This document shows, in pieces, positions 15,014 through 60,200 of a stretch of 64,000 nt of DNA (the stretch's first letter is position 1; each line of letters begins with the position of its first letter). A program made the position numbers and the translations under genes. The notes below the pieces were generated by a model. The model had not been told where the DNA came from, did no database searches, and saw only the letters and a program-made list of their open reading frames with translations. This DNA comes from Takakia lepidozioides (taxonomy: Eukaryota > Plantae > Bryophyta): the NCBI GenBank assembly GCA_030704615.1, contig CM060732.1, positions 57,288,001 through 57,352,000 on the forward strand, read 5' to 3'.

Positions 15014-16201
15014 ATGGTTCCCCAGCTCCAGCGCCCGTCTGAACATCTACCCACGAACGATGAGACCCAACCTCCACCTCTCGTCCCTTCCATGGCCATC
15101 AGAGGCCTCCCACCTCTTCGGCAGAGCAAGTTTCACGTTGAAGTCGAGGAACGCCTCTTGAAAATTCCAGAGCACCGCAAGATCAACTCGTATGATCCCT
15201 ATTGTCGTCTTTCCAACTCATGTGCCAGCTTTTTCTACAGCGAAGTCGTCAGTTATGATCATTTGGTAGCCATCTCTACGATATACACCCTCCTGTGGAT
15301 CCTGGATGACCTTTTGTTTGATATTCCAAGCGACTTGCTCCTCCAGGAGTATGGCATCGATCGCAGCAACAGAATCCATGAGAGCCCTCACAAAATCGGA
15401 GAGTTCCTCAACAACTTGAACATCCTCTTCCGGAACCAAGAGCCTCCGCGCGATCCCATCAAGATCGAGGCGATGTGGTGGAAAGCGGGTCAGGAATTGC
15501 GACGCTTGTCCAACCCACAATGGTTCGATACTTTTGCAGACTCTGTCATGATGCACCACAGATGGTGCGTTTCCAGCCAAGCCGACATTGCAAGCGACCG
15601 CTTCGCCAGCTTATATGTGCAAGACTTGGAGTCTTTCACCAAAATGCGCGCCTGGAACGCTGGATCCTTGTTTATGGTGAATCTCGTGGAGTTTGCCAAG
15701 AACGCCTTTCTTCCAGACGAGGTGCGCGAGCAACCCGTCATTCAACAGATGACCAACGCGGCCGGCGTTCATTGCGCTTTCGTTAACGATATTTTCTCCT
15801 ACGACTGTGAAGTGAAGGAAAGGAATCCGCGCAATATAATCATGGTGTTGATGGAACGTGAAGACATACCGCTACCCCAAGCTGTGTGGAGAACCGTGGA
15901 GTTGGTGAACTGTTGGGCTCGCATCTTCCTGGAGCTGGAGACGCAGTTGGGCGTGTGGGATGCGGAACCTTGGGCCGATGCTCTGCGCCGCTATGTGGAA
16001 GGTATGAAGGAGTTTATGGCTGGCAGTCTTTACTGGCACAGCCTGCATAAGCGCTATCGGAATTCTGACTCAGTTTTCCCAGAGCTCAGGGTCATCACCA
16101 ATGTCCATCACGAACTACAAGACATTTACCTGATCAGATGCAGCACCTGCGTCAACTGTACCCAACAATGCGTCACAACACTTCCAACGTTCAATAATTA
16201 G
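15014..16201 (+). CDS. MTPSL: Microbial terpene synthase-like protein (class I, alpha-domain only), 395 aa, intronless
   Basis: Asp-rich WILDDLLFD (DDxxxD), effector Arg in KMRAWNAG, NSE/DTE motif FVNDIFSYDCE, and C-terminal WHSLHKRY (WxxxxxRY). Single uninterrupted ORF with no beta/gamma domains. Confidence 0.93.
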   Translation: MVPQLQRPSEHLPTNDETQPPPLVPSMAIRGLPPLRQSKFHVEVEERLLKIPEHRKINSYDPYCRLSNSCASFFYSEVVSYDHLVAISTIYTLLWILDDLLFDIPSDLLLQEYGIDRSNRIHESPHKIGEFLNNLNILFRNQEPPRDPIKIEAMWWKAGQELRRLSNPQWFDTFADSVMMHHRWCVSSQADIASDRFASLYVQDLESFTKMRAWNAGSLFMVNLVEFAKNAFLPDEVREQPVIQQMTNAAGVHCAFVNDIFSYDCEVKERNPRNIIMVLMEREDIPLPQAVWRTVELVNCWARIFLELETQLGVWDAEPWADALRRYVEGMKEFMAGSLYWHSLHKRYRNSDSVFPELRVITNVHHELQDIYLIRCSTCVNCTQQCVTTLPTFNN

Positions 16202-38742: not shown

Positions 38743-40045
38743 TCAAACAAAGGCATCCAGTCTTGGGGGAAAGGGGAACCCAAGCCATGCCACAGAGCTA
38801 TGGTTGGGACCCTTGTAGAACTTGTCCAGCCAGTGCCATGACCCTTGCTCTTTTGTGAAATCGTAAAGCAAAACATTCCTCAGAGCCGGGCTTGAAAAGC
38901 ACATGTAATCGCCAACCCCAGTGCACTCAAAATTGGAGAACCCCTGCTTGAATAGCTGGTTGAAGGGCTTCGCAGGCATGTGTGTCAGTTTCTTCCACTC
39001 CCTGTTTTTGTGATTGTACTCCCATATACGAAGGCTCCAAGATGTACGGTTTTTGATTGCACCGGCCATTAGCAGATGTCCCTGATGAAACAACCAAATC
39101 CATTATGAACCTTCCTTGACATGGAAGAAACTGAGTTGAGGTCACAGAATTAAACGTGGAGGAACCAGGCTAGATTCAGCTTAATGAGAAAATCGACGAA
39201 GCCTAGTCCTATGTTATCAAATTGCTCGGCATGAAGGCAAACTCACCCCGATATACATTCGATGGCAACGGGTTTCCAGGGTTCAAGAATCACACCTTGC
39301 GCTCTGCGAGATGCGGGGATGCCACTGGTAATGCTCCCTCGGGAACAGGTATTTCCCTCCAGTGCTTTCGCTCAATATCGAATGACATGATGGACTGTAG
39401 GTAACAAATTTCAAATGGAGCATTTGGCCGTGGGTGGATCAAGAAGTAGAAGACCCCATTCAAGAAGAAAGCTTTGGCGGGCCTTCGAGGCGCCTTACCC
39501 ACCACTTTCCAGCGATCGGTCCTGGAATCGTAAAGCTCCATGGACGAGTCATACTGTGGAGAATTTTGTATATCGGCCCCAGTTGCAAGGATCTTGTAGT
39601 GCTTTCTGTCCTTATCTTCAAAAAAACATACCAGAGGATCGACGCGCTTGCGCAGCATATGGGGCAACCTTCTTGAGGTTTTGGTCAGAGGATTACAGAC
39701 ACAAATTGTCCCCTCTTCCGTACCAGTAATGCAGAGCAAACCACCAGCCCCGGCAACCGGATGCAAGAAATCGTCCGGGAGGTAATCCAGCGGCACAGAA
39801 CACCACGTATTCAGAATTGGGTTGTATGGAAACACCCCATTCCAGCTAAACCCGTAGTCCAAGAGCATGATCCATTCTTCCCGGTTAGGTATTTCTGCCC
39901 TCAATTCAAGAAACGCGGGCGTGAATGGCAGTGCATTCCATCGTCTACACACCACTCGAAAGTGGAAGAATCTGTGCACCGGCAGTTGTGCCAGCACCCT
40001 GTCCATGATCGCATCTGGCAGCAAAGCCCATACTCTTGGATCCAT
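38743..40045 (-). CDS. F-box/kelch-like beta-propeller protein, 2 exons (40045-39296, 39081-38743), 362 aa
   Basis: F-box WALLPDAIMDRVLAQLP...FRVVCRRWN; GGLLC...CVCNPLTK..RRLP; ELYDSRTDRW; C-terminal GFPFPPRLD as in the UFO/HWS-like clade. In-frame GT-AG intron. Confidence 0.92.
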
Positions 40046-41174: not shown

Positions 41175-43023
41175 ATGTTGATCGAACCAAGCTCGGAGTT
41201 TCATGGAGTCCACGTTGTCGTCTTCCCTTTCCCGGCACAAGGCCACACTGGCCCAGCCTTTCAACTTTCGAAGATCTTGGCCAGATATGGCGTCACTGTT
41301 ACCTTCGTCAGCGTGACCCCAAGTCTGGCTAGTGCGAGACAGATTTTGTTTGAAGATCCAGGATTCCAATCACGCAACATGATCCGCTTGGTAGCTCTTG
41401 ATGTCCCTGAGGAATTATGTGGTCGGGACTTCACTCTTGCAAAGTTCCACGACTTAAGACTGATCACAGATAACATGAACGGAGTATTTGAAGACCTCAT
41501 AAGGTCATTGGTGGAGTCAGCTGAAGCTTCCGAATTACCCGGCCCTCCTACTTGCATCATTTCTGATATGTTTTTGGGTTGGACTCAGGTATCAGCTCGG
41601 AACCGAGCAAGTCGTGACATTGTTTCTCTGAAGATTCTACAATGTGTAGATCAAGTTGTCCGTAAGGATTTTGATATCCATATTTATGAACTCTCTTGAA
41701 CTCTCCCCCTCCGACGATCGATGAGTGTGCATCTCTCTCTCTGTCTCTCTGTCTCTCTCATAACACGTTCCGTTGAGGGAATTGCATGGGGTGCAGGATA
41801 TAGCCAACAAGTTTCAAATACCCAGATATTGTCTGTTTTCGTCGCCAGCGCTATTTCTTTCATTAATGTGTCACCTTCCCAGTTTTGAAGCGCAGGGCCT
41901 AATCCCTGTTAAGTCCGATGCGAAGCCCTTGATCATTCCAGGTTTCCCTCCAATTATGTATGGTGATTTGGCGGATTCCCTTTTGGAGACTGGAATAAAG
42001 AAGAACAGAGACTTCCTCGTGTATCATTCAAAGCGGTTACTGGAAGCTGCTGGAATACTCGTGAATAGTGTTTATGAAGTGGAATATGAAGTTATTGAAG
42101 GCTTACGGAACACACTTTCTAGCGATTCAAAGTTGACCCAGGTGGATTGGCATCTCTACAAATACCGTGCAATTAGTTCTTGATTTCTTTCTTTTGGCTT
42201 GGCCAGTCTGCTCTTTCCCTGTTTTCCAAACTACCGGTCGCACAGTCTTGGCTTAACATGTCCAAAATGATCATGTGATTTTTGGCAGGTACCGAGCGTC
42301 TTGACAATCGGCCCTTTGATGGATGGCATCAACAGCGGCATTCGCGAAAACATCACAAAGGTGACTCCAAAAGGGGATGAGTGCTTAGAATGGTTGAACA
42401 GACATCCTCCGTCATCTGTTCTCTATATTGCCTTTGGAACCGTAGCACTACTCACTGCCACACAGATTGATCAGCTAGCTCTTGGACTCGAAGCCAGTGG
42501 GCAACGTTTTCTTTGGGTTCTGAGAGCCCCTGCCATTACGCAAGGATCGGAATCGATTCCCCAAGTCTGGGATTTCCTCCCCGCAGGTTTCGTGGAAAGA
42601 ACAAAGGACAGGGGTCTAGTTTTCTCAAACTGGGCGCCACAGCTCCATATCCTGGGCCACCCTGCCGTTGGAGCTTTCCTAACCCACTGTGGATGGAATT
42701 CCGCAATGGAAAGCATTCTGATTGGTGTGCCGATGATAGCATGGCCAATGATAGCTGACCAGATGATGAATGCACGGCTCATCGTGGATGTTCGCAAGAT
42801 TGGAGTCGGAGTTCACAGGCAAGGATATGGAGCGCATGCGTTGCTTGCAAAAGAGGAGATCGAGAGGGCGATCAGGCTGTTGATGCAAGACGAGCATACA
42901 GATGGCGTAAGGAAGAAGGTCGGGGAGGCGAGCAGGACGGTGGAGAGAGCGGTGGCCGTCGGTGGATCGTCCCACACCAATTTGCACCTGTTTTTGAATT
43001 CCCTCCGTCCAACAAAACACTAA
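41175..43023 (+). CDS. UGT: Family-1 UDP-glycosyltransferase, 3 exons (41175-41588, 41797-42141, 42289-43023), 497 aa
   Basis: HVVVFPFPAQGH (catalytic His), CIISDMF (catalytic Asp), CLEWL...SVLYIAFGT, and a full PSPG box WAPQLHILGHPAVGAFLTHCGWNSAMESILIGVPMIAWPMIADQ. Two phase-0 GT-AG introns. Confidence 0.96.
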
Positions 43024-45110
43024 CACGTCACAAGACGGATTTTTTATATTATTTGTTTTTGTAATTTTTGTATTTTTGTATTTTTATTTTTTTTGCAGAA
43101 CAGGGGACAGAGGCCTTGGGGACCTCTCATTTTAAGATAATAGGGTCTTCAATGGGCATGTGCGATGTGGCCGGTGGGCGGGCCCACCGACCCCAGCACC
43201 CGGCCCGCCCAGCCGCGGGCGTGGCTGCAGCAACCGCGCCCCCGTCCGCCACGCGGTCAGTCCCGCCCATGAGTCCGCTGCCCTCCAGTCTGCCAGTCTG
43301 CTGCCCAGCAGTCTGTCAGTCCGGTGCTGGCCAGTCCGCTGACGGCGCAGGATCGTCACCGTCAATTCCCGTAACCCATCCGAGCCCTCCATTTTTAGGG
43401 CTGCAAAAATGGCAATGATCTTTCTACCAAATCCCGGCCGCTCTCTTTTGACGGTTGTTTGTTGTCCGATGTTGCGGTAGGCATTTCCATGCACGCGACT
43501 GTTCTTCTTTTGCGCGCGATGTTCATGATGATGATGAAGCGTGTGCTTGAACATGAGAGGACTGTCTCGGCACTACAGCCACCATCGTGGATATGCTTCC
43601 ACTATTTTTGCCTTCTTGTTGTGCTTTCGGGAACCTTCGTTTTATGGTTTGGTTCTATGTCATAAATGGAAAATGCGGACATCTGTCGTCGATAACGTCC
43701 TCTGCTTGTGATCCGTCATGATACGTTTAGCCCCTTCGTACTGCATCCCTCATGAGAGCCTTCACAAGTTTAGTTCGTTAAAGAAACCCATGGGTAACAT
43801 GGGCGCGAAAATGGCGGAAGCGTATACACATGGGGGCGTGTATTGCAGATTTCGTATCGGACGATGGGATTGTTTATGTGACCAAGTATAGCGGCTTGCA
43901 TCCGTCGTGCATAAGTTGTGGAAAAGGGTGGAGAATCTGAAGAAACCCAGCTTTGTGATGGATCTACATGGTATTATATAAGGGATGGCAACACAAAAAA
44001 GCAATTCGAGTCGTCACGGAACACCATCCAGTCCTAAGGTCCTCAAACATCCACACGCACCTGCTGAATGCAGATGTCTGAGCCACGACGGGAGATGTCT
44101 GAGACAATTGCATCTGCAAATGCGCGTGGATGTTTGAGGTCCGTTGTGTCGCGAGTCTGTTCACAGTGGGTCCGCTGGCCCGTCAGTGCTCCGGATATTC
44201 CCCTTATCGCGTGCATAACAGTCAGTTTGGAGGCGGTCTGCTGGAAGTCCGTCTGTTGGGATATCAGTCTGTTGCACTTGTGAATTTGTCAGTCTGTTGT
44301 GTCGGAAGTCTGTTGCACTAAGTCTGTTTGACTTCTTATTTTCCCTCCGGTCAGTCTTTTGGCTTGTTCTCCCGCCAGTCTGGCGAAACGTCCGTCTGCT
44401 GGACAATTCTCCTCTATGGATATCAGTCTGTTGGACTGTGCATACATTAGTCTGTTGTGTCGCGAGTCTGTTCGCAATGGGTGTGTTCGACTTTCCTGTT
44501 CTCCCCTTACCCTCTTTTGTCTTCATTCCGCTAGCAGGGAAGTGCCTCCAATATGAAGCCGCTTCGCCTCAGCAAAGCGAATAGTCCGCTGGACTGGCGG
44601 TCCGCTGGACTCTCGGCCCGATGGGAAATGAGTCTGTTGCACTTGCGAGGACCGTGGATGAATTTAGTACGATGCGTTCGTTTGGTGGACGTATTCAATG
44701 CGATGACGGCGGATAGTTGGCGCCTGTGAAATCGCACCACGTTGGCAGTGCCATGCCCGCTTTCCCCCTTCTACTTCTACTTCTTCTCATGTTCCCTGTG
44801 CAATCGACTCCATTCTCTTCGCGCCTGTTTCTTCGCACTGTTTTGCACTGTTTTGTTTTCCTCTTTGCGTTTCCATCACCATAACGAAAGACGGCCGTTC
44901 TTCCCCAGGTGTGGAGAGTCGTGATGAGCCGCGAAGCGTCGCAAACACGCTCGCCTTCATAACAACTCGAAATTCATCGGCTCGGTGAGGTTCTCACTTG
45001 CTACGGTGTTTCCATTCCATTCTGTGTCCTCTTCTTGCTTAGGGTGAGTCTTTTCATAGGACTTCTATTTGTCGCTCATTGTCCTTGCACCCTCGTTTCA
45101 TTCTGCAGCG

Positions 45111-48100
45111 ATGGAGGATGCTTGTGAAAAGGGTGGAGCGGACTGGGTGGATTTTGTGCACCAAACCAGACTGAAGAAGGAGCGAAGGTACTGGTACTCA
45201 CCAAACAAGTTTGATCATAAAATAGTGGAAGCATTTGTAGACCTCCGCGCCCGGAAGCCCAAAAACTCGAATTGGCAGAAGGACAAGCTCTTATGTCCCT
45301 TCTGTGAAGAGGTTATCAAGGACAAAATCCAACTAAATCGGCATTGTGTTGACACGGGTTGCAAGGAGACTGTTGCAATGATTCCACGGGATTTCAAGCC
45401 TTGGCCGATACTGAAAGAAATGTCGATTTTCAAAGAGGCCACAATGCGCTTGCGCGGATCAGTGCTTGACCCCCGCACTTTGGAATTAGACGAAGTCCGC
45501 GCACGGTATGGCGTCCATTCTGGTGGCCCGTCAATGGAGGATTTGCAAGTGCAGGGAACGCCGGATGCTGCCAGAAAACGTAAACTGAGTGATGGGGCCC
45601 AAAAAAAGGAGAGGCAAAAAAAGGAGAAGGCTGCAAGGTCTGCTCGCGAGGCAAGGGCAAAATCCACACAACAGACTAAACCCCATCCTGGGCGGCAGAC
45701 CCACACCATCAGTACTGATACTGAAAGTGAATTTGCTCAGGGCCTGGAAGGGGTGACAAGTCTAGTGGACATTGACTTGCCTGACCAGACTCGGCAGCAG
45801 ACTCACACAAATATCGCGACCCATGCCATCGATTTAGGGTCAAAACCAAAAACTCAACAGAGCACTGAAGGGCCAGTCTGCCCTGGCACATTGCGCCTCA
45901 TTGACTTTGGGCTTTTCCCACCAGAGTGCCCACCAATCGGGGATCCAGACTTCTTCCGTTATTTCTATAGAGTTGCCCAGTCAGGTCTGCTACGCACATT
46001 CATCCGACAGGCGGAACAGAAGTGGTTGAACAGCTTTGAAGATGAAGATGACGATGATGAAGTAGAGGAGGTAATGGTCAGTCTGACCGCCCAGTCTGTT
46101 CTCTGTGCTGTTTGAGTCCATCATCGGGGTCACGTTGCCTATTCAGTCTGGTCAGTCCGCTGCGTTCTCTCCTCAGTCCGCTGGCTCACTCCGCTCGTCA
46201 GTTAGTTTGTTTTATATTGCTGCATTACTTACTAAGTCCGTTTGTCAGTCCGCTGGTACAGCCTACAAGTTGCCTCCACCCTACGTACGCACGTTACGTC
46301 TGTCAGTCTGCTGGTCTGTGAGTCCAGTCCGCTGCATGAGGTGAATATAGAGTCCACGTCCAAGTTCTTGACGTCCAAGTTCTGTGCGTGTACCCAGGAT
46401 GAACGTGTTTCTATTCGTAGGGCCATTCAGGCTTGGCGGATACCTAGCAATGATGCTCATTTACAAGCGACTGCAGTGCGTGCGGAAGTGGACCGCGTGC
46501 GAGAGTATATATTATTGAAGTATCCTGGGTCATCTGCTGCTATAGCGGCATTACATATTGAAGACGCGTCGGGGGGGAATGCGTCTGGGACAGCCGAGTC
46601 TGCCATCCAGCAGACTCCCATTCAGCAGGCCGTTATCCAGCAGACTCCCGTTCAGCAGCCTGTCATCCAGCAGACTCCAACGGAGCAGACTCCCAACGAG
46701 CAACCTGTCATCTTGCAGACTTCTCTCCAAGAGCCCATCATGCAGCCCATGCCAATGGGAAGTCTTGTCATCCAACAGACTGCGGACCAGCAGACTGACC
46801 TGCAGACTGCCTTTCTCTCACATAGCACGGCGTTTTTTGCAGTTTGGCGATCGCCATCACCGGTAATTCGACCCGGAGCTGAAGACCTCACACTTCCCCG
46901 GCTTAGGGTGGGAGAAAATTAATCCCCATTTGGATTGGCATAATAAGCTCCACCGGATTGTTGCGGACCGCCGGTGGTCATTTGTACCCTTTCATTATTC
47001 CATGGAGTTTTCTATTGAGGAAGCCAACCATGTTCTGGAAGCCGCCTTTGCTGTTGCCATTGAAGCCACAAGCGTCCAAAATGCGCCGCCTCTACTTGTG
47101 CAGCTGATTCTCATGGATGACCCACGGCCTGAAGACCTCAGAACATATTCCTATGGCACATCCAACCTTTGGGGTGCGAAGAAAGCACTTGTTTGGATTG
47201 ACTGAGGAGGACTTTGAGCGCATGGCAGCTTCCTTCCTACAACACAGATGGATGCAATTTGGCAATTTCCGCTCATACAACAAGTTGATGAAGGATCTGC
47301 ATAGTTTGAGGATGGACTTACTCCATGGAACAGACCATTCACAAAAGTTTGTGGTGGATGACGCATTGCACTGGTTTGCATTGGTGATGGAGCGAGCAGT
47401 ATTCGACATTGTTTTGCAGAATCCCAATGTCTTCAAAGTCATGTGGTGTGGGATCCCAACTGAAGACCGCATCGGCGCCATTGCTCATCTCGATGGGGCA
47501 TGCCTGTGCCGGAAAATCAAGGACATTGGCCTCGTCGGAAATCTCTTGGAAGGTAAAATGCTATGGGCAACTTTCGTGTTTCAGCTCAATTTCTTTTGCC
47601 AACTTTTTTAGAAGTTCACATTTGCATAAACATGTGTTGCAAGGCGAGTTGATCTGGGAGACAGGCTGCTTTCGACTCTTTTGCCAGAAGTGCAAGGGAC
47701 CTTGTCCTGGCTTTACAAGGAGTTCGGGAGACTGTCCAGCAGACTGGCCACAAGAATGTCCAACAACATATTCCCCACGACACATGTGGGCAGACTGCCC
47801 AAGTGCTGGAGACCGTGCTGGACGAATTTCTGCTGAGTTCTCAACAACATGGTTTTGGATCTGCCAGAGTGTTTTGACCGAGTCCACTTTTCCCCCAGGC
47901 ACATTCGCTGACGACGTCATCAGGTCACCGGTAAAGCATTCTTATCCAGCTCCCCGTGGCCTGCCTTCTATGATCTTCCAGCTTAGTCCCGTTTTCGTGC
48001 GCTCAGTGGCGAAAGCCATAGATGAGTTACGTGATGACCGAACTCAATCTGGGAACGCAAAACCGTATCATAGATCTTACAGAAGAGTCTGAGGAAGCAA

Positions 48101-48630
48101 TTGCCGGTGGGTCTTCCATACATGTTCTTAATGTTTCCCAAGTCCATGGAGATCCGAACACCCAGCCGGCTGTCCACCAGACTGACCAGCACACTGAACA
48201 GTGGACACATGGAAGGACTGCCGAGCAACCTGTGGCGGGGCAGCATACTGTCTTCATTGATGAGGAGACTGAACCGCAGACTAACTAGCAGACTGCACAG
48301 GTCACAGATGGAAAGACTGACCAAGATGGCTCGGAGCGGCAGACTGCACAGCTCAGCTCTGACTACACAGTTCAGACTGCACGGCCTGACCAGCACACTG
48401 CACACTTCACAGAGGGAAGGACTGACGACCAACCTGCCACCGAGCACACTGCCCACATTGAGGAAGAGACTGAACCGCAGAGTTGCCAACAGACTACACA
48501 GTTCACAGACGAAAGGACTGACGAAGAACCGGCGGCCGAGCAGACTGCCCACATTGAGCAACAGACTGAACATGCTGGCAGGCACACTGACAAGGAACCA
48601 CATGCAACGCAGACACCATCTGGTATAGCG
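45111..48630 (+). pseudogene. Second, convergent gene of element A, uncharacterised, multi-exon, partly disrupted
   Basis: Long first ORF from ATG 45111 with CPFC-x12-H-x5-C zinc-finger-like motif, basic NLS-like stretch (ARKRKL) and acidic tract. Later pieces contain QQTP repeats, Cys-rich segments and a ~204-bp repeat. A diverged paralogue at 56520-58060 conserves peptide blocks. Confidence 0.65.
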
Positions 48631-50699
48631 CTGGATTACATGGAGTCTGCTCCCTCACCCTTTGGGCAGGTTGTGCCATTTCCTCTTTCAGCACTGTTGT
48701 TTATGTTTTAGCACATTGTGAAATTGGGCTAATTCGCCATTTTGCTCGATATCCTCACAGGATGTTCGTCCCTCCGTCGGCAGACTGTCTACTTCTGAGG
48801 ACATGACATCTTTCGCCCATGCTGCAAACGTGGGATCGACAACCAAAAAGGTGTGGGGGTGAGCACGCCCCCCGATCCCAACGGACTCCTCCAGTCTCCC
48901 AACTGACTCCCACACAGTCTCCCAAGCATAGTCTCCCAACGGACTCACGCACAGTCTCCCAACAGAGTCACAGTCAACAGACTGCGAGCGCCAGTAAGCC
49001 AGTCTGCTGGTCAATCTGCTGCCCATCCAAAAGTCTGCTCACCACACTTCCACCTCATCCCTGCAACTCTTCCAGCAGACTGCTGGACAGACTAAGTCTC
49101 AAGCAGACTCATCCACAACAGCAGACTCAAAATGGACAGGCTCCAGTGGACTACCTCCCTAACGACTCATGCCAATCCAGCATCCCAGCGGACTCATGGA
49201 CATGGTGCCTACCAGACTAGGTACCAGACCCACCAGTCCTAGCCTCGGCAGCGTACTGCTCGCACATTCAAGCTCAGCAGACTCGGGTGCACAGTGCATG
49301 GAAAAATTGACACCATTGTGTCTATTGAGTTTAGTGACAACATTACAAAACATGCCAGCACCCACAGTACACAAAAGTGCTCATCACCACTGGAATAGAA
49401 AGACTAAAGACTCGCATTTTTATTTCGTACATAGACTTTCATAGGACAAGTACATCATACTCATGGAGCAGTTTCTCTACATCCTCTCACATGCCCCCCA
49501 CGCACGATATACTGGTCACACTGCATTCGCTGCCCTCAAGTGCAAACTGAAGTAAACCAGTCCTTCGTGAAAGTGTTCCTCTCTCTTCTCTGGCTTTGCA
49601 GTCCTGGAGACATTTGCTCTGACTTTTACCCACTCATAAAACACTTGAATGAATGAATGACGTAAAAACCACACTCCCAGCTGATGGTTTTTTGGGCACA
49701 TCAGGCTCGTGGAACTGAAATGCTTGGACATCTCATGCCACTCCGGTGAGTCCATCGAGTACCCTAAGCACTCAGCATGAAGCTTCCGAATCCACCCTAG
49801 AACAAAGGGACTTTATGTCGAGTCCCTGATAGAGTTCAGTGAGTGGACACAGCCCTTGCGGAGGTTGATGATACAAACACTCCAGTGCCCCCTGCAATGG
49901 TATCAAACAACATGGCGTCATTGCACAATCATGATGGGCAGACTCAGCAGACTGACACTCTCAGCAGACCGACCACTCAGCAGACTCAATCTTCAACCTA
50001 GTCCACTCCACACAATACATGAGGGTCAACTTGATCCCTCAGAGTCAGACGACACTGCGAAACCCGACTATGACTCAGGAGACATTCTCAGCAGACTCCA
50101 AAGTGTGCTTACTCTCGTCCCCAATTGGCACCAAAATGAAATCGCACTCTTTCAAGTCCACCACCCATCGTTTAGTGCTAAGGCAATTTCAAGACCTCCA
50201 GAAGGCTTTCACGTTGCCCGTTTGCCCCCACCCCCAATGACTTAAACACCGTCCACGTCGCCGTTGGAACAGAGCACAGCAATAATGTTGGTGAACGCAG
50301 CCTCAACCGACTTCTCATAGAATCGACACCACAGCTCTAGGAGTCTATCTGTGCACTCCAACTCAACCTTGGGCGCCTTTATGTCATCCGGCGACAGTCC
50401 ACATTCAAACCGTGGTGTCCCCTTCAAAAAACATCAGCATGGAATTACCCCACCCACCCGCCTTGACGTGCAGAGCATGTGCTTTGCCAAACCGAGCACC
50501 CATCCTGCACAGAGCAGACCATCCTTCGGGAAGCCTCATGTACTGAACAGACCGACGTCAACATGGTACCAAATACTCTACAGACTTACAGTTCATCAAA
50601 CTGACAAGACTAACCACAACAGACAATGATGAAACCAGCAGCAGACTGACCAGCGTGCAGACTGACCACAACAGAGCGCAAAGCACTTAACGACAAAGA

Positions 50700-53600
50700 C
50701 AGACGAGGAGACTGAGCACAGTACTCACCTGTGCTGCTCAAGAAACACCCACACTCGTTTGTCCATGTCCAAGGCCAGCTTGCGTTCTTGTTCATAAAGA
50801 CGCCAGACCTTTCTTCGCCGGTCTCTTGGTACTCGACCCTCCTCGACCTCCTCAGCATGGTCCACGAGAGTCCGCTTCTTGGCTTTGCCTCTCCCCTGGG
50901 AAGCAAGGACAGCTGTAGGCGGGGGCTGATAGAACAGACAAACGCAAATCTGCCTGCCCGCCTACTTCGCAACAGAGGCTGGTCACGGTTTTGTTTACTT
51001 GCTGGACCGTCTTTGCAGCTTCGTGGGTCGCATGCATAGAACTGACCCGCGCATCGGAGACTGTGCATTAGTCTATTGCGGACTTGTATTTCAGAAAGGG
51101 ACAATGCTACCAGAGGAATTACAGACTTATATTTTCTTCTTCGTGACACCTACACAACGTGAAACCTTGTCTCTTTTCGAGGCATTGCAGACTTATATTG
51201 TCTTCTTCGTGACATCTACACAACCTGAAACCTTGCGAATTTTCGAGTATATTGTGCTGCAGGTGCAGGTGCAGACACCCCTCTTGTGGTTCTCTTCGCA
51301 AAACCCTAGGCCGGGTGTTTTCCAGGCCCCACGAAATCTCTTCTCCTTTTCAGAGACATGTTGTTGTTGTCGTTCAGAAGGACGGAAAGCCTTCGCCTGC
51401 CCCATGGTGCAACATTTCAGCCGCACTTTTCGCCAGGATATCAACGAGCTACCCTCTGCACATACGAAGAGCAGATCGGGCATGTGCCTCCAGGTATTTG
51501 TCATCATCTACAATGCGAAGTATGTCCGCGAATTCTTGTTCCATTTAGGCTGAGACCTCCAGAGGTGCTTCGTCGTAGGGGAAGTCATCCGGAGGATGTC
51601 TTTCCATGAACTGATTGGGATTCGTCGTTGCCGCCGGCACCATTGCCCAAGAGCAATTAGGTAATACTCCATGAATGGTTCCCAGCGCCGTGCCACAAGC
51701 GCGCACAAGGAGGCCATCCTGCAGGTCAGGGTGAAGCATCTTCAGGACACGGACCTGATGCTTGCATAAGTTTCCCCTTCATTGCCTATGGGCACGTGCA
51801 ACAACCCCAATCGCAATCAGGTTGTAAACAATGTATGTTGTGCCGGGGTGGTTGCTGCTGAGAACGTAGGCTGGTTCACCACGACCCAGGGAAGATGTAC
51901 ACTCTCAGCAGAGAATGTCTCGTGCCGCAAGTATAGAACTGGATATGTATTTTTTGTGTTTGTCATTTCTTTATGAACCCGTGGGTCTTCAAATGGATTG
52001 CGTACCAGTAGTGTATTAGCACACGGCAGTGAGTTCCCATATAGCCAGTCCACTCTACGACCACTCATCTTGCCTTCCTCATGGCCAGTCTTGCCTTCAG
52101 ATTTTCCATGGTATTGCCTCAATGCTTGCGTTTTGTGTCTTGGCTCGCATGAGGGACTGGCGGGCTGCTGTACACCACATTGCTATTTTGGGCTTTCCAG
52201 TACTGTTCGATATAGTCAATAAATTCATGTCCTTTCGGATTTTTTGACCTCATACGACGGATTCTCCTTGCAACCCACCGAAGCGCAATTTTCTCGTGCT
52301 GGTCCCCCTCTACCGTACATGAGGTCTCCCATATCCTTCAACAAGTTTATTAGCGGTCACCCGGCTCCTTCGTTTTCTTGCATGATTGCTTCACCATGCC
52401 TTGCGGACATGCCAAAGGCAGAGGAAATGAGTATTCCTTTCAAAAACAATTCTGCCCACACATGGTACACATTAGAGTCTTGTGATCGGACTGCAATGGT
52501 GGACTGCCGGAGTGGGACTGTAACAGCGACCTGTATCAGCGGGCAGAGCCACTGGACTCTCCCAGTGGACAGTACAATGCCATGACGTTGATGTGCTGAA
52601 TTACCCATTGGACTACCCAATGGACTTCCCCATTGGACTTCCCCTAGCTAGGACTGGGCAAACAGCGGACTGCATCACAGACCCACAAACAGCGGACTTC
52701 CCGACGGACTTGCTAGGGATTGCCGATGGACTTGGCAGCGGACGGCCGACCCCAGGGACTGCTGAGTGGACTTGGCAGCGGACTTGGCCGGACTGCCGAG
52801 CTGACTTGCCAGGACCTGCCGAGTGGATTTGCCAGCGGACTGCGTGAGCACTTGCTGGGGACTGCCACAGCGGACTTGCCAGGGACTGATGAGCGGACTT
52901 GACAGCGGACTACCAGTGGATTTGCCTAGCGATGCCATCGGTTTTGCCACAGGAATCTGCCAGTGGACTGTAGCAATGGACTGCTGCAGTGGACCTTGAC
53001 AATGGACCTGTGCTGTGGACCAACAGACTTACCGAATAGCGTTGATTTCTGCTTCGGCATTGTCCACATGAAGGCATTGGTCACCAGCTCGGCAAATCTG
53101 CGAGGAGTGAATCGCGCAAGGCTCTCGCCACGGAACCAGGTCTCTTTGTCCGATTCCTCGGCGGATAGGATATAGACACACTGGTATAAACCGTTCAACC
53201 ACTCGTCGAGAGACCATCAACGTGTACAATGGGAACTGTTGGAATGCACAATGTAAGATGGTCAGAGCATGCAAATTCCGCTCATTCTGCACGAGAAGAC
53301 TTCATAAGAGTGATGAGGTCTGCAGCGGTTCACAATGGGTCTGCCCCAAGTCCATGGAATCGTTCAAATAGTACCTTGTCATGATTTGTCCCAAAGGTTG
53401 CATCACACATGCAACGATACGGTCATGTCCTAGTTCCAACATTCGTCGTTTCTGGCACGGAGTCTGTATGGCCAATAGTGAATGTCAAATCTCCATCAAA
53501 ATGCTCGATGTTGGCTCTAATTTCTCCTCTTGATAGAAAAAAACGGACGCGGGATTCTGGTCTCTCCACCTCCCATGCACACACTCTCCGCATCATTGGC

Positions 53601-54530
53601 GTGTTTTTGAAGGTTTGGCCACGCACTTTTCTCGGCAAGGTTGCAAACATCTTGCCCAACAAGAAATCACGCGGTCCATGCATCGCCCAAGCCGTTGTTG
53701 TTCATCATGTTCTCTTTATATGCTCCATCATGATTTGGGCGACCGACAGGCCTCGGCACAAAACTCGACGACCCAGGCTTTTCAAATCGCACTTGCTAAT
53801 TGTGGCGTAGGCGCGGCGGGTGTTCCTGAACCCTCGGACTTCCCATGCGAGGGTTTCCCTTGCGCATCTGTATGCTCCATGTTGTGTAGTACGTGAGGAC
53901 ACAGATGTCAGGGGGAGATAGCATTGCTGGACCTTGAAAACAGCATTGGCAACCACGCTTGTAAGACTCTCCATACTCCGACTTCTTCTCCTTGGGCCTT
54001 TGTGAGGACAAGATGTTCCAGTTCCAGCACCCACAAGAGGTCCTCCACGCTTCTGTTTTGGATCCTCCATATTGCCTTGTTGGTACGATTGTCATCAGGA
54101 CCGTAGCAGCATTGATAACCTGGATAGAAAAATTCTAAATCGATATCCAACGACTTGAGGAGCATAAAATCAGAGAACTCATGAAACAAAAATGGCAACA
54201 GATATGCAATGAAACATCAAAAGGACTGAGGATGGTGCACACATAATACTGGACAGAATTTGTTGGCTCTGGGTGCTTTTCGCGAGCCGGGTTCCACTTT
54301 AGAATGGACATTCACCCAAAACTGAGTGGGGTAGTCATCCAAACTCTCCTCTCCCAGGACAAAGTCACCAACTCTATCCCAAGGAATGCAGGCCTTTTCA
54401 ACATTCACTCGCACACCCATAAACCCATATTGCGTCTCACTCTTCCAATGGAGATCCTTCCTGTTGGAAGGGTCCTGGTTTTGTTGTTTGCAAACATTGT
54501 CGAAGAGGCCGTTATAAGCGGGCTTTTCAT
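50700..54530 (-). pseudogene. MULE-type DDE transposase with SWIM finger, frameshifted
   Basis: Ordered minus-strand motifs: DLHW...ACIPWDRVGDFVLGEE..YPTQF; YQCCYGPDDNR; KRGCQCCF; RGLSVAQIMMEH; RDFLL; DATFGTNHDK/FPLYTLMV; VDNAEAEINAIR; SIE/QYHG...RRVDWL; SWIM CTCP*AMKGNLCKH (~51765-51805). Confidence 0.85.
52590..53030. repeat. GCGGACT(TGCC) motif array inside a transposase intron
   Basis: More than 15 ggact-containing short repeats between two transposase exons. Confidence 0.7.
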
Positions 54531-55125
54531 GATCAGTATATCATCGGGTTTGGCTTCCATGTCCATGCCCTATACAGTACAAAGGACACACTTCTAAACA
54601 TGCAAGAAACACGCGCTGCAGTACAGGCACGATCGACAACGTGCCAGGAGAACAGTGCGCATTTCGCGGCTGCTGCTGGCAAATGGCAGGCGGCAGGGAT
54701 AAAGGTTTTGAATGCAGCCCTAAAAAAAGGGAGGGTTCGAATGGTTATGGGAATGGACGGTGGCGATCCTACGCCGTCAGCGGACTGGATGGCAGGGGAC
54801 TGGCCAGCGACTGGCAGACTGTGGCAGCGGACTGGCGGGCAGACTGCGGTACTGGTGGCAAACTGCTGGGCAGCAACTGGCCAGCAGTGGACTGGCAGAC
54901 TTGAGGGCAACAGACTCATGGCGGGGGACTGGCCGGCGCGGGCGGACGTGGGCGCAGGCGCGATTGCTGCAGCTGCGCCCCCGCGGCTAGGCGACCGCGC
55001 GCATGCGGCGAGCGGGGCTGGGGCGTGTGCTGTGCAGCCGGTCCCGCATCCGTGCGTGGGACCCCCCGCCACATCGCACGTGCCCATTGAAGACCCTATT
55101 ATCTTAAAATGAGAGGCGCCCTGGG

Positions 55126-58100
55126 GCCTCTCATTTTACAATAATTGGGACGTTACGCGGCGCACTGCGCGAGCTGACCGTGGGCTCCCGCGCACAGATG
55201 CCCGGCTCCCCCGCCGCTGCGCGCATCGCCCCCGGCAGCACCCCCCTTGTGCGCGGCCCACCAGCCGCACCCACGGCAGCCCCCCCGCAGTCCGCCCAGC
55301 CATCCCTGCCCCTGAGTCCAGTTCCCCTCAGTCCGCCAAACCGCCAGTCTGTCGGCCAGTCCCTGCAAGTCCACCCAACAGTCCGTTGTGCCCGTCTGTT
55401 GCCCCCTAGTCTGTCAGCCCGCGCCGGCTGAAGGATCTGGATCGTCCATTTTGAGAAACCTATCCGCGCCATCCATGTTTAGGGCATGGGAAATTGCAAC
55501 ATCTTGCCACGAACTCGCCCCCTCGTTCTTGCATCTCTTTGTTGTCTGTCCAATCAGGCGGAGTTGACTTTGCACGCATGCGGCTGGTTCTTCTTGTTTA
55601 GGGCAATTTTAATGACGATGAAGGGTGTGCTGAACATGAGAGGGCTGGCGGGGCTCTACATCCACCATCGTGCATATGCTTCCACTATTTTCGCCTTCAT
55701 TTTGTGCTGACGTGGTTATTTTTTAGGACGATATGTGGAAAAATTGCATGCGTTTACAGTTTGTGGTGTGTGTCTAATTCCGAGCTCTTTCGTATGGAGC
55801 AGGAAACCATTGGTAACAAGATAGCGGAAATCGCGAAAGCATGTGCACGTGGGGGCATGTATACATTTCAGAATTTATGTCCACTGATGAGACTGTTCAG
55901 GGGAGGACTTCTTTGCCACCACACCTTCTGGTAACTACTGGCGGAGAGTGTGAATGAAACAGGATCCACCGAAAGTCCTCAAACATCCAGATGCACCTCC
56001 TGAATCATCATATCTCAACCACTACTGGCTCCTTGAAAATTGGACAATGGGAAAGGAGACGTAGCCTGAGAGATGTGGATTCACGTTGCTTGTGGATGTT
56101 CGAGGTCCTTACGACTGCAAATGCGCGTGGATGAACAGGCTCTTCGACTGCGTCTTTGTCAATACTTTCTCTAAGCAGTGTGTTGGGCCATGAGTATGGG
56201 CATATGTAAGTCTGCTGGACGGATGAAATGCAACCACGGCATGACAAACGTGGTTCTGATGGGATATCAGTTTGGTCTGCTGGACTGTTGGTATGTAGGT
56301 ATACCAGTCTGTGTTGGCGCGAGTCTGTTCTTCACTGGACTACTGGGTCGTCATTTTGGAAACAAATCAGGAAGAGGGCAAGTCACATCCCAAACTTGAT
56401 CTAATCCTGAATGAATATAAAGATATGTTTCATGATGGGAGTCTGCTGGGAAAGAGTCTGCTGGGCAAGAGTCTGCTGGATGCCAGATTGAGTGGGCTCT
56501 GTGTCCACCGAGTCTGCAAGTCAGTATGGTGTTGACCAGAGAGTTGGTGCATGCCTTGTCTGCAAAGTCCACTGCTGCTATGGCGTCTGCTGAGCCAGGA
56601 TACTTGAACAAGATGTATTCCCGCACCCGCTCCACTTCCCAGTGCACCGCATTCAATGCTAAAGGAGGGTCGGAGCTCGCCGTCCGCCAAGCACACTTGG
56701 CCTCCCGAATACTGGCTTTGGTATATGACATAAAACCCAAAAACTCAACATCGGACTCACCAGCAACAGACTCATGGCAGCAGACTCACCAGCAGACTCA
56801 CCAACATCGTGGCAACAAACAAATGAACCGTCGGACTCCAGCAGACTCAACGGCAAGAGACACCTGCGCACGTATAGTAGACTGAACCAGCAGACTCTAT
56901 GACAACAGACACCTACGCACCTACAGTGGACTGCGGGAGGGGACTATACTACTGGACTCAGGAAGCAAGATGAGCAAACTCATGGGACTGACCAGCAAGT
57001 CCACAAGCAGACTGATGCAGCAGACCGAGCAGGTAGACTACCAACTGTGGGGACAGACTGGGCATTACCTCGTCGTCGTCGACACAGATGTCCTCCTCAT
57101 CTTCAAGGGAGCTCAACCAATTTTCCTCCGCCGCTCGGATGGTTCTGCTGAGCTGTCCGGACTGGGCAAAACTGTAGAAAAAATGGAAGAACTTTGGATC
57201 GTCCACTGGTGGGCGTACCGATGGGAGAAGCCCAAATGGTATCAGGTGCAATGTGCCAGGACAGACTCCACTGCTAGTCTCTTTTTACTGCACTTTGTCC
57301 ACATGAACCCTCGACTGGTCAGGCAAGACAATGTCGACGAGAGATTAGACCCCTCCCTAACCTGCGAATTCATCATTTCAGATGATGTCTGCAGACGGCT
57401 CAGCAGACTGACTCTCACTTGAACTACTGATGGTTTGCGTCTACTGCGTAGACCGTCTCCCTGGCATAGCCCGTGACACTTCCCGACTGTCTTGGGGACG
57501 AGTCTGCTGTTGAGATTTTGCCCTCGCCTCCCGAGCAGAACTTGCAACCTTTTCTCTTTCCTTCTTCTGGGCCCCATCACTAAGTTTCTTTTTTTCTGGG
57601 AGCCATAGGCAATGGCGATGTTAGGTCATGCATATCTTGCATTGCAACAGTAGAACCCACCCCATACCATGCACGCACTTCCGCCAAAGTACGGGCCTTT
57701 GGGTTTGCGCCGCGGAGTCTGGCGGTGGCCGCATTCACCATCCTCATTGAACTTTGAACTGGCCATGGCTTGAAGCCAGGTGGGATGTGGCGCTTGTTTT
57801 TTTTTTGGCAACCCTGTCAACACAATGGCGGTTTAGCTCGCACTTTGTCCTTGATAATTTCACTACAGAAGGACAGTGGAGCTTATCCTTCTGCCAGTTG
57901 GAGTCTGTAGGCTTGATTACGCGTAGGTCTAAGAATGCTTTGACTTTTTTTGCATCATACTCCTCAGGTGAAGTACCATCCTTCGCTCCTTAGCCTGGAC
58001 TTGTGGCACGAAATGCAACCATTCTGCTCCACCCTTTTCACAAGCATCCTCTATGGCTACAGAATCAGACAAGAGATGCAGCGGCAATGAGCGACAGACA

Positions 58101-60200
58101 TACGAAGAATAAGAAAGCAGAGAAGACCGAAAAAAGAAATGGAAAGAAACCAAAACACAAAGAAGAAAGTTCACCGGGCGTGTTGCGGAGACGATGGTTG
58201 TTGCGACGATTCGGTGTTCATAGCGACTGTCCGCCGCCTCGAAAGCTACCACACAAAAGAAAGCGGGCTCGCACAAATGGGAGGTGGACGGGCCTAAAAC
58301 GAAACAGTGCGAAAGAAGTCCGCGGAAGTGGGACAACAGGTCATAACCCTGCATGCCGACCATGCCACGAGTGACGTGACGAGATTTCACTGGCGCCCCT
58401 TTTTGGCCGCCATCGCAGTAATAGTTTCAGACCCCTCACACGTGCTGTCGGTATGCCACGTCAAGCACGACATCCAGCAGACGGAAGGTTCAACAGAAGA
58501 AGAAGAGATTGAGGCAGACGAAATGAGTGGGACTATCGTCAGTTTGTCGTGGCCGCATTCATTAAGACCAGCTTGGCTGGCTTTACTCCTGATGACAAAG
58601 AACGCCGAGCAGACCCATTCCCCTCGACAATAGACTCATATGCCCGCCAGCAAGGATGGACTGACACTGAGGTTAAGCGAACTGACAAAGAGACTCAGGC
58701 AAGTCGGAGTCTTGTGCGGAGATTGATGATGTGGCGCGATGTGACTGGGCCTCATTACCACCGTCGTTGCATTTATTGCGTCCAGCAGACTTACACCGAA
58801 TGACATACGCCGACAGACCCACGGCAAACAACTTGCTCAACAATAACTCAGATTCCACTGCAACGGACATCCAGTAGACGGAAGGTTCAACAGACTGACG
58901 AAGAGACTGGCACAGAGTACTTGCGCGACAACATACTGATTTTCTAACAGACTAATATCCCAAAAGACAAAGTATCCCCTAGGCGGCCGGGTGATACAGG
59001 AGTAGACCTTGAACCGTAAACCGCACTTTCTGTCCGAGTTCGGACGCGGCGCGAGATCACTGGCGCCCCTTCCCGCCATCGTTGCATTAATAGGTCCAGC
59101 AAACTTACACGTGATCATAATGACGACTCAACAGACCTAGCGCAAACAGACTTGCGCCACAGCAGACGGACTTCATGACAATCTAGCTGACTGATATCAG
59201 AAAGAGCGGACAAACCAGTAGTCCGACGGCTCAGCAACTCACGACAATGCGGATAATTAAAAGGTAGTAGTTAAACGGACTCATATCCAAAGAAACGGAC
59301 TTCCAGCTGTCTGACGGTTCAACAAACTGACGAGAGAAGAGACTTCGAGGATAAGACGAGAGAAGACGCTTCGGAATTCGACATGTATGTGGAAGGGGAA
59401 TGCTCAGTCTGGTTAGCATACTAACGCTGAACATGGATAAACTAAGGGCCAACATGCCGTTCCGCCCGCCCACGAGAGTGTCCACCAGACTCGACAGCAG
59501 ACTGACCAGAGTGACGAGCAGACTAATCACCAGGCTGACCATACTGAGGATACTGAGCAGCAGACTGACGCTAACATTTGCCAGACTGAGGGCCAACATG
59601 TCCGTCAACAGAGTCTGTCATAGTGCCCTTGGCTACAGCAGGTCCGGACTTGGGCGTTAAGCAGGGGAGCAGTACCCCATGCGCTTCCTTCCAATGACGC
59701 CCTACATGTTGTGCCCTAACGTCTTTCACCTCTATGATTTCAGATTTATTTTCAATTTCCGTGTATTGACAGGATCTGTTGTACCTACAGGATGTCCGCC
59801 CCACAGACCTCAGGACACCATTTCCCTCCCAGGCAATTCCACAACCCGTCCATGGTTCTCACGTTGGCTCCACAACCAGAAAATGTGGCTTTTTTACAAC
59901 GCCAACAGATGCACGGATTAGTTCAACGCATGCGACCCGTGAGGCTGCCAAGACAGGTCCTGCAAGTGTGAACAAACCTGCAGACACAGTCGTGTTGCGA
60001 AGCAGGACCGCATCACTTCGTCAGTCTGCTGAATCGAACCCGGCCACAGTAGTCGCCGAATCCCAGGGCACAAGTAGAGCGAAGAAGCGGACTGTCGTGG
60101 AGCAGACTCATGAAGTTTGGGAGGGTCCTGTTGTGAAGAAACCTGCGAAGTGCTCACACACTACACAACCTTTGAGAATAGTGCTTCGGGAGTCATAGTT
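55126..60200. mobile_element. Mutator-like element B, rearranged sister of A
   Basis: Starts with a related TIR gcctctcattttacaataattggg. 55560-56300 parallels A 43480-44300 directly. 56520-59220 parallels A 44300-46560 inverted (EDACEKGGAEW, PPVDDPKFFHFFY..AQSG, EVERVREYILFKYPGS). 59900-60140 parallels A 50815-51060 inverted. Right TIR not seen. Confidence 0.8.

Follow-up and report, generated by a model that had tools for sequence, protein, structure and literature searches.

What kind of element occupies the 12 kb between positions 43113 and 55126 of this window, and does the protein it encodes belong with mobile transposases or with host genes? The window, the whole stretch that we analyzed, comprises 64 kb of contig CM060732.1 of Takakia lepidozioides. 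The initial annotation described the segment as a transposon bounded by terminal inverted repeats (TIRs), whose transposase resembles the stationary plant SWIM zinc-finger genes of the At4g13970/At1g60560 type. Our results indicate that 43122-55117 is very probably a dead member of a two-gene DNA transposon family of the Mutator-like element (MULE) kind, present in many copies in a non-seed land plant. The proposed kinship with the host genes is a more tentative matter, which we take up at the end.

Are the boundaries those of a transposon? A 36-bp core, CCTCTCATTTTAAGATAATAGGGTCTTCAATGGGCA, is perfectly repeated at 43123-43158 (plus strand) and 55081-55116 (minus strand); these two sites, both at the ends of the element, are its only matches in the 64 kb, where none would be expected by chance, and the core matched no contig in the metagenome collection. 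The left TIR (43122-43405, plus strand) is about 284 nt long and the right TIR (54713-55117, minus strand) about 405 nt, in agreement with the lengths first annotated; their inward limits, near 43405 and 54713, come from inverted-repeat detection, BLASTN, and MAFFT. Aligned over 319 positions, with 124 gap columns, the two arms share 77% of their bases, a figure that rises to 86% in the first ~80 columns. The left arm has AGTC[CT]GCT three times in its subterminal part, and the right arm exceeds the left through extra short repeats containing this word. Directly outside the two tips lie the 9-mers GCCTTGGGG (43113-43121) and GCCCTGGGG (55118-55126), each abutting its TIR. As had been proposed, they agree at eight of nine positions, the mark of a target-site duplication (TSD). 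GCCYTGGGG has no exact match in the window other than these two sites, and a fixed pair of 9-mers would agree at 8 or more of 9 positions by chance with a probability of ~1e-4. The annotated span had thus caught a real element together with its TSD, and the element proper runs from 43122 to 55117, about 12 kb. Long TIRs (often at least 100 bp in plant MULEs) with subterminal repeats are found here, as is a duplication of the length typical of MULEs, 9 bp within a range of 8 to 10 bp (PMC5499845).

The right-hand 9-mer is also the entire spacer between this element and a sister element, which extends from 55127 to 60150 (plus strand) and whose far end we did not locate within the window. The sister TIR begins at 55127 with CCTCTCATTTTACAAT, is about 61% identical to the arms of the 12-kb element, and lies head-to-head with the right TIR, so that one 9-mer copy of the target sequence separates the two facing TIR tips. 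The left subterminal region is present in both elements, in direct orientation, and so is the 5′ part of a gene that we call the partner gene, which is inverted in the sister. A pair of 35-nt inverted repeats (56205-56239 and 58761-58795, 89% complementary) brackets the inverted segment, which suggests that recombination between them turned it around. No transposase homologue was seen in the sister within the window. This arrangement raises the possibility that the element and its sister are one rearranged composite, produced by aberrant or alternative transposition or by inverted duplication, and that the apparent TSD is a mere spacer. Such a history would account for tips facing each other across only 9-10 nt and for an inverted partner-gene segment bounded by inverted repeats. 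Yet the spacer matches the far-left 9-mer of the 12-kb element at 8/9, as an ordinary TSD does, and identities of only ~61% in the TIR and 55% in protein point to old, separate lineages rather than to a recent duplication. We therefore consider a composite improbable. Serial insertion into one target site would be the simplest reading of the pair, and the head-to-head arrangement across one target copy may reflect insertion beside ends that were already in place.

What does the element encode? On its minus strand lies a decayed, multi-exon transposase gene (51548-54566) that runs from an ATG at 54566 to a stop after ..PLEVSA at 51548. Every motif string quoted in the initial annotation was found on this strand and in the stated order, namely, IPWDRVGDFVLGE (54349-54387), CYGPDDNR (54085-54108), KRGCQCCF (53937-53960), DATFGTN (53384-53404), VDNAEAEINAIR (53032-53067), GRRVDWL (52042-52062), C-x-C (51789-51815), and LCKH (51734-51769). 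The strings are spread over all three frames, and the gene had been described as frameshifted. This description stands in part: indel damage is present at some of the frame jumps, but at least three others are explained by canonical GT-AG introns, which we predict from the DNA. The first (139 nt, phase 0, 53236-53374; AAG/GTACTA...CAACAG/TTC, with slashes at the splice points) would follow ..HDK and join ..DATFGTNHDK to FPLYTLMV..; given this intron, the frame change between DATFGTN and the next motif needs no indel. The second (581 nt, phase 2, 52452-53032; CG/GTAAGT...GGGCAG/A) would fall within the R of ..EINAIR and join this string in frame to IVFERNTHFLCLWHVRKAW; it contains seven plus-strand copies of AGCGGACT in small tandem arrays. 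The third (59 nt, phase 2, 52336-52394; TG/GTGAAG...TTGAAG/G) would interrupt the W of ..RKAW and join that string in frame to IWETSC...

The frame changes left over after the introns are damage. In the present copy, the gene carries many 1-2-nt indels and in-frame stops. Compared with other copies of the family, 1-2-nt indels occur at 12 sites (51617, 51970, 52131, 53160, 53210, 53404, 53470, 53884, 53937, 53985, 54466, and 54512), with the indel variants making up from ~40% to >99% of the summed depth, depending on the site and the sequencing run. When a local script introduced the indels of the family, the open frames grew longer; the one spanning ..FTIG/IQTPCQK../DATFGTN, for example, went from 92 to 122 aa. 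None of the three frames has a stop in 53985-54134, and two paths through 54134-53884 are conceivable. In one, a phase-0 donor within exon 1 would be spliced to an acceptor at 54120, so that the coding frame would pass straight to KRGCQCCF and miss CYGPDDNR; in the other, CYGPDDNR would stay in the coding frame, at the cost of further indels.

Three side observations concern this gene and its surroundings. Some other copies (X1 depth, 906) lack exactly 109 nt, corresponding to 54118-54226; this deletion adjoins a possible GT..AG intron and puts exon 1 in frame with KRGCQCCF. At 53937-53985, a paired +1/-1 indel in about half of the family read depth shifts 16 codons, including KRGCQCC; a double frameshift of this kind, with the second change compensating the first, may separate two subfamilies in their zinc-finger region. 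Immediately 3′ of the transposase gene, 50813-51055 is 70% identical at the nucleotide level, in inverted orientation, to 59908-60150 of the sister; the segment looks noncoding and has no Pfam family.

To which superfamily would such a protein belong? Read by motif, the first catalytic Asp candidate is the D of DATFGTN (53402-53404, minus strand, as for all positions in this protein), and the second is the D of VDNAEAEINAIR (53062-53064), ~66 residues further on. In the spliced reading, a (C/D)(2)H motif, CLWH in FLCLWHVRKAW (52394-52426), follows the second Asp by 21 residues, and the Glu of NASIEAI (52112-52132), at 52118-52120, is the catalytic candidate ~101 residues past the same Asp. Toward the C terminus lies a SWIM-type string, C-x-C-x(~8)-C-x-H (..CCTCP / ..GNLCKH.., 51734-51815), which a frame change splits in the present copy. 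Toward the N terminus, KRGCQCCF...MEHTDAQGKPSHG (53842-53960) forms a zinc-finger-like string, C-x-C...H-x8-H, that is interrupted by frame changes and reads as possibly WRKY-GCM1-like. MULEs and hATs have in common a conserved W and a (C/D)(2)H motif located 15-45 aa past the second Asp (PMC5499845), and the candidate Asp-Asp-Glu (DDE) core and the motif at this distance are both apparent here by motif reading. An origin in another cut-and-paste superfamily, such as hAT, would fit that common motif and its W, as well as the lack of any MULE profile match. However, the hAT TSD is typically 8 bp (PMC5499845), whereas this element has a 9-bp TSD and TIRs of several hundred base pairs with subterminal repeats; its protein also carries the SWIM-type C-x-C..C-x-H near the C terminus and no recognizable hAT dimerization region. 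The (C/D)(2)H spacing, the long TIRs, and the 9-bp TSD point to the Mutator superfamily rather than to hAT, and we regard membership in hAT or a similar superfamily as very unlikely. The Mutator assignment of the initial annotation thus agrees with the TIRs, the TSD, the D..D..C(2)H..E series, and the SWIM string; it holds at the level of motifs.

Is the gene a property of the element, or was it picked up from the host? We counted contigs in sequencing reads that match 51400-55126 at 80% identity or more. Three runs of one sample from a single species contain 2238, 1013, and 789 such contigs, a plant metagenome contains 71, and every bin of the gene region is covered. Summed over the gene, the word depth is of about the same order as at the TIR tip. 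Long, low-depth contigs have a depth of ~50-75 against a summed depth of 10^4, which suggests hundreds of copy-equivalents, though contig depth is not a copy number. Because thousands of read contigs match the gene region, we are dealing with a repeated family rather than with a captured one-off host gene, and the view that the element carries its own gene is upheld. The competing explanation is a Pack-MULE, with Mutator TIRs surrounding a SWIM gene that is a captured host gene or pseudogene. It would account for the absence of a Pfam MULE match on the gene pieces and for the similar motifs in stationary host genes that the initial annotation puts forward. Nevertheless, thousands of diverged contigs match the gene, at a depth close to that of the TIR tip, which is not expected of a single-copy gene taken from the host; the DDE/C(2)H/SWIM layout is typical of a transposase, and the intron of the gene contains the short word that marks the rest of the family (see below). 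A Pack-MULE therefore has, in our estimation, very little chance of being correct.

Several points weigh against the identification of the element as a MULE with its own transposase. The superfamily assignment of the protein draws on short motifs and on spacing read by eye. Ten stop-free pieces of the transposase had no Pfam match at an E value of ≤1, including PF10551. A HMMER search with the piece at 53426-53701 (minus strand), a poorly conserved linker, returned only two spurious repeat proteins; a word-indexed protein search with the pieces at 54220-54519 and 53032-53301 (minus strand) gave no match; phmmer against PDB gave none for the transposase pieces; and a feature search of the ESM Atlas returned only unrelated clusters below the threshold. 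All these negatives are weak, since the transposase was searched as separate stop-free pieces of at most 128 aa, partly out of frame. Furthermore, CYGPDDNR may or may not lie in the coding frame, neither an intact transposase copy nor RNA support was seen, the reads bear on how often the gene recurs and not on whether its copies sit within the same TIRs, contig depth does not equal copy number, and the TSD pair is imperfect. Other searches were also negative. PF03101, PF03108, and PF04434 had no match on the zinc-finger string or on either half of the SWIM string, each of which is split by frame changes. A search for related loci in viral, bacterial/archaeal, and metagenome collections returned one chance bacterial match (L002); none of 10 open reading frames (ORFs) of the window was present in the protein collection by exact look-up; and no further MULE genes that could serve as a reference were found within the window.

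Does the element carry anything besides the transposase gene? The partner gene lies on the plus strand, convergent with the transposase gene, and consists of two open frames. The first (45069-46112) encodes 348 aa here, likely starts at the methionine of MEDACEKGG, and contains a zinc-finger-like C-x2-C...H-C string. The second (46242-47608) is broken in the present copy. Both are intact, with 362 and 418 aa, in L001 (Logan contig SRR15431198_3284909, 2862 nt), which is colinear with 44909-47760 at 96% identity. In a word-indexed search, the protein of this contig (P0003/L001, 96% identical) was the single relative of the partner ORF, and it is the sole relative in the protein collection of any part of the element; a second look-up starting from L001 returned only L001. 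The comparison with the sister element covers 329 codons, with 55% amino acid identity, a nonsynonymous rate (Ka) of 0.36, a synonymous rate (Ks) of 0.95, and a Ka/Ks ratio of 0.38. Therefore, the partner gene has been under purifying selection during the divergence of the two lineages. Against L001, Ka/Ks is 0.2-0.5, with few changes. The partner gene has no Pfam family, VANC-type families included, and no relative in PDB, and an AlphaFold2 model of the C-terminal part of its protein had a predicted local distance difference test score of 48 and was unusable. Between the two genes lie internal tandem repeats (48182-48571) with periods of 96 and 201 nt. MULEs that carry an Ulp1 peptidase (KI-MULEs) are, like this element, two-gene elements of similar size, whereas no Ulp1 was detected here: Peptidase_C48 (PF02902) had no match among 34 stop-free segments taken from the two strands of this copy, where decay could hide it, no signal on either strand at 46.9-51.5 kb, and no match in the intact second ORF of L001.

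A further trait of the element is the 8-nt word AGC(A/G)GACT. We counted 41 copies within the 12-kb element and 21 in the 8.9 kb on its right, against 3 in the 43 kb on its left; the last count is close to the chance rate, and the enrichment is ~50-fold in the element and its sister. The word is found, inverted, in each of the TIRs, seven times in the predicted 581-nt intron of the transposase gene, and in the partner gene, where the form CAGCAGACT encodes QQT repeats (46600-46800). Its placement in the TIRs suggests that AGC(A/G)GACT is a putative binding site for the transposase or for the partner protein. VANDAL21 (Hiun) of Arabidopsis is a MULE with accessory genes, including VANC, and contains many copies of one short word, also in tandem arrays. 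The AGC(A/G)GACT arrays, with their ~50-fold enrichment, resemble this arrangement, as does the presence of an accessory gene. Unlike VANDAL21, the element also has its word within coding sequence, as QQT, and in the two TIRs, where it is inverted, and no homology of its partner gene to VANC was detected.

How does the element compare with other known systems? With the MURA-type MULEs (MuDR, Jittery, and AtMu1) and Muta1, it has in common the long TIRs with subterminal repeats, the 9-bp TSD, a zinc-finger-like region, a candidate DDE core with C(2)H, and a C-terminal SWIM-type string; its partner gene would take the place of mudrB, the second gene of MuDR. Unlike in the MURA type, its pieces have no match to the Pfam MULE, SWIM, or DNA-binding domains, its partner gene belongs to no known family, and its N-terminal strings (IPWDRVGDFVLGE and others) and the GRRVDWL block after the Glu candidate cannot be placed in MURA. 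FAR1/FHY3/FRS, MUSTANG, and At4g13970/At1g60560 have the same general layout as the one proposed here, with an N-terminal zinc finger, a MULE-type core, and a SWIM finger. In contrast to this element, which is bounded by TIRs and a TSD and is highly repeated, they are stationary host genes without TIRs.

Taken as a MULE, the element would work as follows. In intact relatives, the minus-strand gene would produce a transposase with an N-terminal zinc-finger DNA-binding region, a DDE core with the C(2)H motif, and a C-terminal SWIM finger. This protein would bind the long TIRs, probably at AGC(A/G)GACT, excise the element, and rejoin it with a 9-bp staggered cut of the target. By analogy, the mechanism is expected to be like that of Muta1, which makes double-strand breaks with a hairpin on the flanking DNA and then joins the 3′-OH ends to the target (PMC5499845). 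The plus-strand partner is a genuine accessory gene that selection has maintained. The present copy would have inserted ~100 bp downstream of a UDP-glycosyltransferase frame and later gained its frameshifts and stops, with the diverged sister, which appears to have no transposase, abutting it head-to-head and one 9-bp copy of the target left between the TIR tips.

The surroundings of the element contain several other features. The UDP-glycosyltransferase open frame (42301-43020; PF00201, E value of 2e-24) ends ~100 bp before the element and is followed by a T-rich microsatellite at 43040-43095. Farther to the left are a microbial-type terpene synthase-like ORF (15014-16198; PF19086, E value of 7e-24), which is in keeping with a non-seed land plant, and an F-box/Kelch ORF (39293-40045).

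What, then, does this locus mean? The present copy is ordinary: it belongs to a known kind of transposon and has decayed. Less ordinary are some traits of its family: a transposase too divergent to be matched by profiles in fragments, a conserved orphan partner gene, and one short word raised ~50-fold above the background and present at the ends, in an intron, and within coding sequence. The joint proposal that the transposase is a mobile relative of At1g60560/At4g13970 and that the word is read in a VANDAL-like manner, by either the partner protein or the transposase, is tentative, and we put it at slightly less than an even chance. In the searchable literature, At4g13970 and At1g60560 turn up in just two papers, both on unrelated matters, are not named as transposon derived, and are absent from the accessible lists of exapted transposons; SAME1, a Brassicaceae-specific MULE-derived gene, is unrelated. 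If the kinship is true, At1g60560 and At4g13970 would represent an unrecognized ancient domestication of a MULE, alongside FAR1/FHY3 and MUSTANG. The element would then be the first lead on how this conserved family of seed-plant genes, of unknown function, arose and would provide a mobile outgroup for its study.

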